Source: Bugula neritina (lineage: Eukaryota; Animalia; Bryozoa). Taken from it: a stretch of DNA of 64,000 bases. Under the pieces are notes generated by a model. That model was not told where the DNA came from. It saw only the letters and a list, made by a program, of their open reading frames with translations, and searched no databases. This document shows, piece after piece, positions 52,201 to 62,714 of the stretch (positions are counted from its first letter, which is position 1; each line of letters starts with the position of its first letter). Position numbers and translations under genes: made by a program. The stretch is taken from contig OZ037767.1 in assembly GCA_964035545.1 (NCBI GenBank), positions 12,238,401 to 12,302,400 on the forward strand, written 5' to 3'.

Positions 52201-55200
52201 TGGAAGGATGGCTGCAATCAGAGTGTATATATACACTATGCTATATACAGTCAACCTCTGTACCGTGTGTATATTGATAATATAGTGATATATAGTGAAT
52301 ATAGTGATATACTGTGAATATAGTGCTATATTGTGAATATAGTGATATACTGAGAATATAGTGATATACTGTGAATATAGTGATATACTGAGAATATAGT
52401 GATATACTGTGAATATAGTGATATACTGTGAATATAGTGATATACTGTGAATATAGTGATATACTGTGAATATAGTGATATACTGAGAATATAGTGATAT
52501 ACTGTGAATATAGTGATATACTGAGAATATAGTGATATACTGAGAATATAGTGATATACTGAGAATATAGTGATATACTGTGAATATAGTGATATACTGT
52601 GAATATAGTGATATACTGTGAATATAGTGATATACTGAGAATATAGTGATATACTGAGAATATAGGTGCTATTATACTTTTGGTATTGACAGCATATATC
52701 GACAGCAACAGTGAAGGCAGCGATTCGGATCTCTCCGATGTCGCAGAGTTAGATTCCGATGTGGAAGCAGAGAAACAAGTCTCCTATGACCGAGAGCTAG
52801 ATGCCAAAGATATGAAATTGTTAAAAAAAGAAATTAAATCAGAACTTGGTGCTGGTGAAAAGCGCAAGCAAGCCCCAAATGATAGCCTTAGGCTGCAGTT
52901 TGTGCATGGGTAGGTTCTGTTACTTCATTTACTCATCTTTCAATAAAAAAACTGTATGCACTGTTACATTGGTGTTTACTGGTATTGTAGATACAGAGGA
53001 TATGACTGTAGGAACAACCTGTTCTACACTCAGACAGGGGACATAGTCTACCATGTTGCTGCTATAGGTATTATCTACAACAAGAAGACACATAGTCAAA
53101 GGTTTTACCTGCAGCATACTGACGATATACTTTGTCTAGCTGCTCACCCTCTGAAGGTCAGTTTTACTTTGTAATACAGTATGTATATGTAAGTACAGTG
53201 TGTGCTATATGTAAGTACAGTGTGTCCTATATGTAAGTGTAGCATGTGCTATGTGTAAGTATAGCGTGTGTTATATGTAAGTGTAGCATGTGTAAGTATG
53301 GCGTGTGCTATATGTAAGTATAGTGTGTGCAATGTGTAAGTACAGTGTGTGCTATATGTAAGTATAGCATGTGCTATGTGTAATTATAGCGTGTGCTATA
53401 TGTAAGTGCAGTATGTGCTATATGTAAGTGCAGTGTGTGCTTATGTAAACATATTATATATGAATTATTTTTCTGAATCTATACTAAGAATAAAACACTT
53501 CCCTAAGTTTGCTCTGCTGTATCTTTGACATTCAGGACTACGTGGCAACTGGTCAGGTTGGAAAAGACCCTGAGGTGCACATCTGGGATGTAGAGGCACT
53601 GAAAACTCTTGCTGTGTTGAAAGGAGCGCATGAAAGAGGTGTTTGCGCTCTTGACTTCTCATGTAAGTGGCTTCTTTCAACATACATTTGATGATATCTT
53701 ATCTGTAGATTAGTTTACTAATACTAAAACATGTAGTTATTTTTCTTATTGGTTGTATCACAGCTTTTTGCTATTGTAACCTTTTACCACTAACCTAGTT
53801 CCACTAGGCTGGGATGGATAGATGGATATATATATATATATATATATATATATATAATAAATAGGTATACGAGAAACATTGTTATTTATTACTTTATTAG
53901 GTAAAGTAATAACACTGATATTTCGGGTACCACTGTACCCATCTTCAGAGTAGCAATGAATGAAATTTAAAAATTATTATGTTACGTTAGACGTTATGCA
54001 TGACACAAAGAATAGAGAGTGGCAGTTACTGTAAATTATTGAAACTTAGGGAGATAATCTTATTTTATATATTACGCAGGTCAAAAATTATACTGATTTT
54101 TTTGCATAAAAAATAAATTAGAGTTGACAACTCTAATTTATTTTTTATGCAAAAAAATCAGTATAATTTTTGACCTGCGTAATATATAAAATAAGATTAT
54201 CTCCCTAAGTTTCAATAATTTACAGTAACTGCCACTCTCTATTCTTTGTGTCATGCATAACGTCTAACGTAACATAATAATTTTTGAATTTCATTCATTG
54301 CTACTCTGAAGATGGGTACAGTGGTACCCGAAATATCAGTGTAATTACTTTACCTAATAAAGTAATAAATAACAATGTTTCTCGTATACCTATTTATAAT
54401 CAAATTACTAGCTCGTAAAGATATATTTAAATATATATATATATATATATATATATATATATATATATATATATATATATATATATATATATATATGGTA
54501 CTAATACAATTTTGGATATAAAAATAAACTTAGATCTTCATTTTATCGACTACAATATTGTTTCACGTAGTGCAAGCTACGATCATCAGATCGTTGTGTG
54601 TACGCTTGAGTGATTTTGTTTTGAAATTAGCATTGTTAGTGTATTACTACGCTGGAATGTTTTAACTAGCGTCTGTTAGGTGCGCAAGTAAAAATTTGCG
54701 TTTATGTCTACACGTGGTGGAAAGCGCTTTTCGTTTGTTGAGGGAAGATAATTCTGGTTGTTTTAAAATTATATATTTCTCATAGTTGCATAAGTTACAT
54801 CTGTTGGTTATGTTTGAGTATGATTTGCAAATTTTTAAAATATTCCATTTTAAGCTGAATTTCATGTTGTTGTCTTTTAAATTCCAGATGTGTCTGCTGA
54901 GTTGTGTGCTGTTGGCTTTATCTGCATGTAGGAAAGAGGCTTTGTGGTTATTGAATCTGGTTTTGAAGGTAGTCGAACAGAGTCCTATGTATGAATTGCT
55001 GGAATTGTTGTCATGTCTTGTTACAGTTGCTTGGTATATTACGCCTTTGTATAAGCATTTACCATTTAATGGACAGTGGGAAGGTTGTTTGCAGTTACAT
55101 TGTGTGTCATTCAGTTTAGTAGCGGTAGTAGGGGTGTGTGCGGTTTTAAGTTTGTGATGGTTCGAGCCATCAATAATATTTTTCATGTTGGGCATGCATG

Positions 55201-62714: not shown

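Follow-up and report, generated by a model that had tools for sequence, protein, structure and literature searches.

Penelope-like elements of three families inserted at TA microsatellites as the probable cause of an enlarged EML intron in Bugula neritina

An intron of 8.9 kb in a gene for an EML microtubule protein of the bryozoan Bugula neritina is occupied largely by Penelope-like elements (PLEs) of three families, and its expansion from less than 1 kb is very probably due to three PLE insertions into TA microsatellite sequence. The window analyzed here is a stretch of 64,000 nt of contig OZ037767.1, to which the coordinates below refer. Approximately 8.0 kb of the intron is PLE sequence and approximately 0.8 kb is unique sequence and microsatellites. 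The identity of the elements was established from their proteins, their architecture from repeat analysis, their association with the target from genome-wide mapping of ends, and the conservation of their motifs from alignments of homologues. We regard the locus as a clean, fully resolved case of roughly tenfold inflation of a compact intron by PLEs, and of hammerhead clustering.

Results

The expanded intron (53663..62519, +, 8857 nt) extends from GT at 53663 to AG at 62519. The exon on its 5' side (53494..53662, +) matches positions 20-73 of the Pfam Beta-prop_EML profile and the exon on its 3' side (62520..62782, +) matches positions 75-143 (E 9e-21), so that the two are contiguous in the profile, each exon having been searched singly against Pfam. 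HELP motifs on upstream exons confirm EML as the identity of the host gene. Since the stop-free exon segments upstream are spaced about 140-750 nt apart, the remaining introns are shorter than 1 kb, and the disparity in intron length described in an earlier note on this DNA is borne out.

Five (TA)n arrays were located in the intron by TRF and the dispersed repeats by a repeat finder, which together reproduce the order read earlier from the letters, i.e. (TA)n, family A, (TA)n, family B, microsatellites with (TA)n, family C, and (TA)n. The arrays are (AT)15 on the left flank of family A (53826..53856), (AT)38 between A and B (54421..54496), (AT)n at 56507..56562, (AT)23 on the left flank of the family C complex (56806..56851), and (TA)17 on the right flank of that complex (62306..62340). 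Families B and C are separated by a non-PLE spacer (56485..56805) consisting of TA-rich sequence plus (AT)n (56485-56563), followed by (CACG)n (56579..56681, TRF) and a 120-nt repeat.

Family A is present as a palindrome. An inverted 273-nt 3' end without tail (53854..54126, -) lies 1 nt away from a direct 273-nt 3' end with a 29-nt tail (54128..54429, +, tail at 54401-54429), and the repeat finder gives 99% complementarity for the two arms (53854-54126 and 54128-54400). Elsewhere in the genome, where copies are 273 to 1661 nt long, 17 of 30 distinct ends of the family have this tail, and the copy at this locus is 99-100% identical to many of those copies. The 5' truncation points of 17 oriented copies are scattered (298, 298, 298, 400, 411, 433, 455, 505, 514, 679, 843, 1137, 1191, 1212, 1317, 1567, and 1661 nt), with no peak at 273. 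The family had initially been taken to lack open reading frames, a view overturned by the longer copies, which carry reverse transcriptase (RT) and GIY-YIG frames. The coding content was read from one frame-shifted copy of about 1.7 kb (L031), in which L031:1075-1962(-) matches Pfam RVT_1 (E 6e-10) and L031:675-1175(-) contains a GIY-YIG frame with a Cys pair, read by eye; in this single long copy no Cys and no Zn-finger linker is visible upstream of the nuclease. The RT has YIDD and the nuclease is of the 'YVGETGRRL' type. What is seen of family A at this locus is two 5'-truncated 3' ends, placed head to head, from a coding element that by eye would be assigned to the canonical (Penelope/Poseidon-like) PLEs. 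The palindrome centre was also considered as a microRNA precursor and rejected: the MIR9481 matches score 50 bits where 130 is the gathering score, and they occur on both strands because the inverted repeat forms a hairpin.

Family B is a 5'-truncated Hydra-clade copy whose 3' end has no tail (54497..56484, -), with an open frame of 600 aa (54662-56464, -). Other genomic copies are 96-97% identical to it, and exact-match patterns for the B terminus recovered few copies because the copy at the locus is 3-4% diverged. Family C forms a single complex with three parts. The first is an inverted, 5'-truncated 3' fragment of 477 nt without tail (56847..57323, -), 100% complementary to both 59151-59627 and 61753-62229. 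It is followed by a direct copy that lacks the first 220 nt of the unit (57322..59703, +) and by the full 2602-nt unit (59704..62305, +), the repeat finder reporting a direct repeat of 2602 nt at 100% identity. The full unit encodes an ORF of 707 aa (59762-61885, +) and ends in a 76-nt tail (62230-62305, +) that is absent from the inverted copy. Family C at this locus is 99-100% identical to many other genomic copies, and a tail-less inverted partner with a tailed direct copy is found at five other family C loci; the distance between the parts is 1.9-2.6 kb at two loci on contig C2 and at one each on C5 and C6, and 5.9 kb at a further locus on contig C3. The partial tandem (pseudo-LTR) structure, the inverted truncated partner, and the one-sided tail that characterize PLEs are all found in family C, and the tail pattern likewise in A and B.

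The PLE identity proposed in the earlier note is upheld by predicted structure for B and C and by the RVT_1 and GIY-YIG frames of the long A copy. The proposal that the three families are unrelated was mistaken, as the proteins of B and C align over 594 aa at 48% identity and both carry the Hydra signature, leaving only A in another, canonical clade. No domain was found in the B and C proteins when three ORFs, including these two, were searched against Pfam, RVT_1 was matched by just one of 20 homologues, and neither phmmer nor a 20-sequence profile returned anything useful from PDB sequences. In the AlphaFold model of the Hydra-type protein (pLDDT 85.7), the RT region is matched best by Foldseek to telomerase RTs (6zd2, 3du5, and 6zd6; E about 1e-7, probability 1.00), with RTs of DRT, retron, R2, and LINE-1 type ranking next. 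For the nuclease domain Foldseek alone gave a weak match (E 0.17). VIA-align superimposed the C-terminal domain on the I-TevI catalytic domain with Z 9.2 and rmsd 2.3 over 89 of 92 residues, on T4 EndoII with Z 8.4, and on the UvrC GIY-YIG domain with Z 6.5, unrelated structures scoring below 3. The B and C proteins are predicted to fold as a TERT-like RT joined to a GIY-YIG nuclease.

RRLRWK and SDKTNNFY are present in family C. Across 20 aligned sequences D116 and K117 never vary, and R37, W38, and T118 show almost no variation. A second alignment, of 16 sequences, shows no variation in the GIY-YIG residues Y, YxG, R, H, E, and N, in C7, C9, and C15 of the CxCX5C linker, or in C106xxC109-E112, N126, and C135-R-H137, and no Cys lies between its GIY and YIG strands. 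In the published account of the Hydra clade (Craig et al. 2021, Mol Biol Evol, PMC8557442), the elements are described as shorter than 3 kb with a single ORF, RWK, DKG changed to DKT, a C-terminal nuclease, a CxCX5C linker, a CxxC before the conserved E, and a CxH after the conserved N. The family C unit, at 2602 nt, is below that size limit. B and C carry all of the motifs published for the clade and, by these motifs, are probably two families of it. A BLASTP comparison of the C protein with the family A RT detected a weak colinear match through FDV, YxDD, and FLD (E 0.18); A belongs to a clade different from that of B and C on present sequence comparisons, and this alignment supports nothing finer.

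Six hammerhead motifs are found in the intron: in the inverted arm of A (53913-53952, -, predicted cut between 53917 and 53916), the direct arm of A (54302-54341, +, between 54337 and 54338), B (54547-54593, -, between 54551 and 54550), the inverted piece of C (56892-56942, -), the truncated direct copy of C (59532-59582, +, between 59574 and 59575), and the full C unit (62134-62184, +, between 62176 and 62177). They were recovered with a type I descriptor, composed after inspection of the sites, which calls for CUGANGA, a helix II no shorter than 4 bp (one 1-nt bulge allowed), GAAA, helix III, UH, and a helix I that is likewise no shorter than 4 bp. On both strands of the 64 kb, exactly six matches were obtained, all inside the expanded intron and all at the places where hammerheads had been noticed by reading, as compared with a mean of 0.01 in 100 dinucleotide shuffles of the window. 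The six sites amount to three distinct sequences with a common core, since one sequence is repeated nearly unchanged in both arms of A and another exactly in all three copies of C. Each family therefore has its own hammerhead with its own helices, as had been suggested, and the dense cluster of six ribozymes, although real as a count of motifs, reduces to three sequences brought in by three insertion events.

One type I motif is found per element, at 50-120 nt from the 3' end, and its helix III is a perfect or near palindrome, which is the design published for PLEs. In family A there is an extra base between A9 and 10.1, helix II has 6 bp opening with G-C, and helix III is the palindrome AUAU; in B and C, helix III is palindromic or near-palindromic over 9-10 nt. 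Family C variants retain pairing through wobble changes, and at least eight hammerhead families occur in about 200 kb of loci, all with the common core and with every helix different. With Rfam, no hammerhead was found in the whole window at the gathering score or in 53400-62800 at E<=10, and the only matches in that stretch were spurious microRNA and snoRNA matches at the palindrome centre and microsatellites. Scanned alone, the family C motif gave a full-model match to Hammerhead_1 (RF00163) that scored 17 bits where the gathering score is 34, and the A and B motifs scanned alone gave none. The A, B, and C motifs are putative ribozymes.

Mapping of element ends in the genome confirmed the docking at (TA)n postulated in the earlier note. 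(TA)n adjoins 28 of 30 distinct ends of family A, 26 of 27 terminal ends of family C, and 44 of 48 tail-less ends of family B, against a chance rate of 0.5-0.7% (about 0.6%). The unpaired 5' ends of four truncated A copies (L006, L008, L026, and L030) also adjoin (TA)n. The flanking arrays have a median length of about 50 nt (range 10 to 210 nt) genome-wide, and those at the locus, at 31-76 nt, are typical. In the neighbouring EML intron lies a compound TA/TG array, about 275 bp long (51452-51725), that no element occupies, so that an array of such size could be split three times without regrowth. Of the proposal that each insertion splits and regenerates (TA)n, the splitting is thus evident in the flanks, and regeneration is both unsupported by their ordinary lengths and unnecessary.

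Discussion

We consider with high confidence that endonuclease-bearing PLEs have inserted into the TA microsatellite sequence of this intron on three separate occasions. The nuclease would target (TA)n, and for that reason (TA)n would be left on both sides of each insertion; the flanking (TA)n would remain a target, which would allow stacks of PLEs to build up. In the mechanism published for PLEs (PMC11167929), both DNA strands would be cut and extended and reverse transcription would start at two alternative internal sites, and the one-sided tails and inverted partners seen here fit that scheme. The family C complex is of the classic PLE kind and would have been made in one event, with tandem partial and full copies creating the pseudo-LTRs. 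B would be the oldest insertion, and A and C recent ones. The insertions may also have some effect on the host gene.

In comparison with the Hydra clade (PMC8557442), B and C agree in RWK, DKT, CxCX5C, and the lack of CCHH, in the short single ORF with RT followed by a C-terminal GIY-YIG nuclease, in the presence of hammerheads and of nearly all insertions in (TA)n, and in the pseudo-LTRs, inverted 5'-truncated partner, and one-sided tail seen at this locus. The B and C proteins differ in that their identity to proteins of the search database is no higher than 50-58%; their named homologues are from a bivalve and a bryozoan. Family A resembles Penelope/Poseidon-type PLEs, e.g. Poseidon of Anolis (PMC11167929), in its RVT_1-type RT with YIDD, its GIY-YIG nuclease with a Cys pair, its optional 29-nt tail, its head-to-head inverted copies, and its variable 5' truncation, but differs in inserting near-exclusively in (TA)n. 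The minimal hammerheads of type I that Cervera and de la Pena (2014, PMC4209133) described in metazoan PLEs share with family A the extra base after A9, the 6-bp helix II opening with G-C, and the palindromic helix III, and with B and C a palindromic or near-palindromic helix III; the location of the motifs in the terminal repeats is also shared. B and C exceed the minimal motif in the length of helices I and III and are nearer to canonical type I. Published PLE hammerheads, for which cleavage as a dimer in longer-than-unit transcripts has been proposed, cut poorly in vitro (PMC4209133), and in the Anolis system cleavage is not required for insertion (PMC11167929). Because such elements and their choice of (TA)n have already been described, the locus is a clear example and not a new device.

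The reverse transcriptase might instead have synthesized the (TA)n tracts as 3' microsatellite tails, as happens with some non-LTR elements, with no landing pad involved. Every PLE-touching (TA)n in the intron does touch a 3' end, an arrangement that also follows from both outer ends of head-to-head pairs being 3' ends, and the A tails and B cores finish in TA-like bases. The occurrence of (TA)n at the 5' ends of the four unpaired truncated A copies, the existence of long unoccupied TA arrays such as that at 51452-51725, the spread of array lengths, and the interpretation of the same pattern as target preference by Craig et al. (PMC8557442) make this quite improbable. Nearly as hard to accept is a reading of family A as a retrozyme without coding capacity, a unit of about 272 nt and of the circular-RNA type that is mobilised in trans by PLEs. 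Its arms here are 273 nt, a 2026 preprint connects retrozymes with PLE pseudo-LTRs (bioRxiv 10.64898/2026.07.22.740005), and the 546-bp palindrome resembles the animal non-LTR retrozymes (PMC7229834 and the same preprint) in being short, non-coding, hammerhead-bearing, and PLE pseudo-LTR-related. The scatter of the 17 truncation points and the extension of longer copies into RT and GIY-YIG frames argue against it, and the A pieces lack the fixed length and head-to-tail arrangement of those retrozymes (PMC7229834), being truncated copies of a coding element.

Two further alternatives are considered extremely unlikely. Assembly is difficult through three 100%-identical copies and five TA arrays, and the nest, or the identical tandem and inverted structure of C, could be an assembly artefact; yet the same arrangement, a textbook one for PLEs, recurs at the other family C loci on contigs C2, C5, C6, and C3, and the exons on either side meet precisely in the EML profile. 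Equally hard to credit is co-option of the sense-strand hammerheads (54302, 59532, and 62134, all +) for cutting EML pre-mRNA and tuning the gene. Three motifs and the family C ORF are indeed in the sense orientation of EML. However, A and C are very recent, as judged by their 99-100% identity to many other copies, and too young for conservation, and PLE hammerheads of such design cut weakly (PMC4209133).

We return to insertion of endonuclease-bearing PLEs into TA sequence as the preferred reading. A broader reading of the same data is doubtful, although less so than the alternatives above. The TA arrays would be communal, one becoming two at each insertion, and two deeply diverged lineages of one genome, Hydra-type PLEs with CxCX5C and canonical PLEs with no visible Zn-finger linker, would share a near-absolute target. 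Something other than the linker would then determine target choice, in conflict with an earlier proposal. On the same doubtful reading, families with hundreds of 99-100% identical copies would stay active at low cost to the host, and the sense-strand hammerheads would also cut host pre-mRNAs such as that of EML.

Several PLE families in this genome seem to be very young, with frames that are uninterrupted and a target that is strict and simple. If so, the genome would be a convenient natural system for examining what sets PLE target choice, the role of the hammerheads, and the origin of inverted and tandem copies. For annotation, such hammerheads fall below Rfam thresholds and Hydra-type proteins are missed by Pfam.

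The 120-nt repeat in the spacer between B and C (56686-56805) is a low-copy repeat that includes a 46-nt hairpin. It has nine other matches at 85-90% identity, all of them on contig C1 at 34.2-34.9 Mb.

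Host gene and intron

The host gene is an EML family member on the plus strand, identified from exon translations and profile search; when each exon was searched separately, HELP was recognized twice (E 2e-20 and 6e-13), as were the two EML beta-propeller families. Positions 20-73 of the Beta-prop_EML profile are covered by the exon ending at 53662 (+) and positions 75-143 by the one that begins at 62520 (+), so that the 8857 nt from GT (53663) to AG (62519) form one intron. The stop-free exon pieces upstream are spaced 140-750 nt apart, and the other introns here are thus shorter than 1 kb, as an earlier note on this DNA had stated. 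Approximately 8.0 kb of the 8857 nt is sequence of Penelope-like elements (PLEs) of families A, B and C, and the intron without its elements would be ~0.8 kb, similar to its neighbours.

From left to right, the intron consists of 163 nt of unique sequence, (AT)15, an inverted arm of family A (53854-54126) separated by one base from a direct arm (54128-54400) with its 29-nt tail, (AT)38, family B on the minus strand (54497-56484), a 321-nt spacer (a TA-rich stretch, (CACG)n and a 120-nt low-copy repeat), (AT)23, the family C complex, (TA)17 and 179 nt of unique sequence. The family C complex comprises an inverted 3' piece of 477 nt (56847-57323), a direct copy lacking the first 220 nt (57322-59703), and a full unit of 2602 nt including a 76-nt tail (59704-62305). 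The family C ORF and three of the hammerhead motifs lie on the sense strand of the EML gene. The 120-nt spacer repeat (56686-56805) carries a 46-nt hairpin (56691-56736) and has nine other copies of 85-90% identity, all at 34.2-34.9 Mb of contig C1. Two intronic tandem repeats are found a short way upstream, one at 52500-52665 (19-nt unit, 8.7 copies, 97% identity) and the other at 53184-53448 (22/125-nt unit, ~12 copies); downstream of the next exon are a long (CT)143 array (62994-63276) and a (TCAC)27 array (63893-64000).

Classification of the three families

The 273-nt arm of family A has at least 443 candidate matches of 99-100% identity, and oriented copies, measured from the 3' end, are 298 to 1661 nt long without a favoured length, on which sample a fixed-length retrozyme was rejected. 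In a long copy, a reading frame that Pfam assigns to RVT_1 (E 6e-10, YIDD) precedes a GIY-YIG frame containing a Cys pair. Given the varied lengths and the two frames, family A is a canonical coding PLE represented here by two paired 3' ends that are 5'-truncated, and is not ORF-less. In one long copy (L031:675-1962(-), from C3:18515900-18521500), no Cys-rich linker was seen upstream of GIY-YIG; despite the lack of a visible linker in that copy, family A equals the Hydra-type families in its specificity for (TA)n, a point of relevance to the proposed role of the linker in choosing microsatellite targets.

The 5'-truncated B protein (600 aa) and the 707-aa protein of C share 48% identity over 594 residues; B and C are therefore related families, and the description of all three as unrelated was too strong. 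Pfam found no domain in either protein. Their more than 2400 homologues are ~700 aa long and in many cases encoded on contigs 2.3-2.7 kb in length; those with a named source are from a bivalve and a bryozoan. A structure model built with 20 sequences (pLDDT 85.7) best matched telomerase reverse transcriptases, then the DRT, retron, R2 and LINE-1 RTs. A separate model of the C-terminal 148 residues (pLDDT 86) matched the I-TevI catalytic domain (Z 9.2), T4 EndoII (8.4) and UvrC GIY-YIG (6.5), against Z below 3 for unrelated proteins in the same comparison. EN+ PLEs are defined by a TERT-like RT joined to a C-terminal GIY-YIG nuclease, and by these predicted folds B and C are EN+ PLEs; the PLE identity proposed earlier stands for all three families. 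In Craig et al. 2021 (PMC8557442), the 'Hydra' clade is characterized by a length below 3 kb, RWK, DKT replacing DKG, a CxCX5C linker, no CCHH, CxxC and CxH around conserved E and N, hammerheads, and insertion of nearly all families in (TA)n; all the features so listed are found in B and C, invariant or nearly so.

Hammerhead motifs

A type I descriptor, composed after the sites had been seen, matched all six hammerhead motifs where the earlier note had placed them and no further site on either strand of the 64 kb, versus 0.01 per dinucleotide shuffle. The six sites represent only three distinct sequences, one for each family; each family does have its own hammerhead, and the number of independent ribozymes had been overstated. 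Rfam at its thresholds called none of the six. When the motifs were scanned alone, that of family C matched the full length of Hammerhead_1 at 17 bits, under the gathering score of 34, and A and B gave no match. In the family A motif A9 is followed by an additional U, helix II has 6 bp, and all that is left of helix III is the palindrome AUAU; helix III is a 10-nt perfect palindrome in B and a 9-nt near-palindrome in C, which has an 8-bp helix I. These traits agree with the description of PLE hammerheads in Cervera and de la Pena 2014 (PMC4209133), where a base is inserted between positions 9 and 10.1, helix III is palindromic, and the motifs act as dimers and cleave weakly in vitro.

In ~200 kb of other loci of the same genome (L001-L065), the descriptor found at least eight hammerhead families that share the core but have no helix in common, each of them located at PLE ends next to (TA)n. 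Among family C variants, the substitutions turn G-C or A-U pairs into G-U, and every pair is kept. The shared core with differing helices, together with pair-keeping variants, indicates that the motifs are conserved structures and putative ribozymes. One motif among these loci looks canonical (helix II GGGG/CCCC, helix III ACAGCUGCUGU). A MIR9481 / MIR3627 microRNA gene at 54065-54189 was rejected (Rfam 48-50 bits on both strands, gathering score 130), the matches being due to the centre of the family A palindrome.

Insertion and the (TA)n target

Head-to-head partners with an extra tail at one end only are common to A, B and C at many loci, the tail being 29 nt in A, 76 nt in C, and present on about half of B ends; Craig et al. 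(PMC8557442), in their Fig. 2, present this arrangement as a PLE signature. According to work on Anolis Poseidon, the two strands of the target DNA are each cut and extended, with reverse transcription beginning at either of two internal sites whose distance equals the tail (PMC11167929); the same course would explain the one-ended tail and inverted partner here. The three copies in the family C complex are 100% identical and an inverted tail-less piece is paired with a direct tailed copy at five other family C loci, so a single insertion event is a better reading of the complex than an assembly error. Judging by identity to other genomic copies (96-97% for B, 99-100% for A and C), B probably inserted first, A and C being recent. 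Another family C copy with an inverted partner (C3:12321256-12321828) lies ~19 kb past the window end.

Docking at (TA)n was confirmed for 28 of 30 distinct ends of family A, 26 of 27 terminal ends of family C (the other being in (TG)n), and 44 of the 48 tail-less family B ends among the first 100 exact anchor matches, against a background in this window of 0.5-0.7% of random positions followed by (TA)5. The observation of six hammerhead motifs, PLEs and (TA)n is correct and well above chance; as to its interpretation, the kind of element, the family-specific hammerheads and the docking hold, and unrelatedness, ribozyme number and regeneration were overstated. Unpaired 5' ends of family A also adjoin (TA)n, which argues for a pre-existing target and against a 3' tail made by the element. 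Stacking is frequent: for about 10 of the ~55 ends counted, a second PLE end lies on the far side of the array at a distance of ~100 nt or less, and the 'landing pad' is real in the plain sense that one array becomes two after insertion.

Of the self-renewing pad, the splitting stands, and we found nothing that requires regeneration: the arrays in this intron, at 31-76 nt, are typical of PLE flanks (median ~50 nt), and the next intron upstream in the same EML gene consists mostly of a compound (TA)n/(TG)n array of ~275 bp (51452-51725), which stops 3 nt short of the acceptor AG and, having no element in it, forms an empty counterpart to the occupied ones. Together, the five arrays here contain ~240 bp of TA repeat (~120 units), comparable to that ~275 bp. 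As the spacer between B and C includes sequence that is neither PLE nor TA, the ancestral intron may have had two (TA)n arrays instead of one. All features here agree with published PLE biology, within which A, B and C of this intron are new members. A further occupied TA array lies 18 kb upstream (35700-35850), where a ~55-nt stub of the 3' end of a family C-like element, its hammerhead reduced to the 3' half (GAAA box, helix III and cut site), sits directly on (TA)48.
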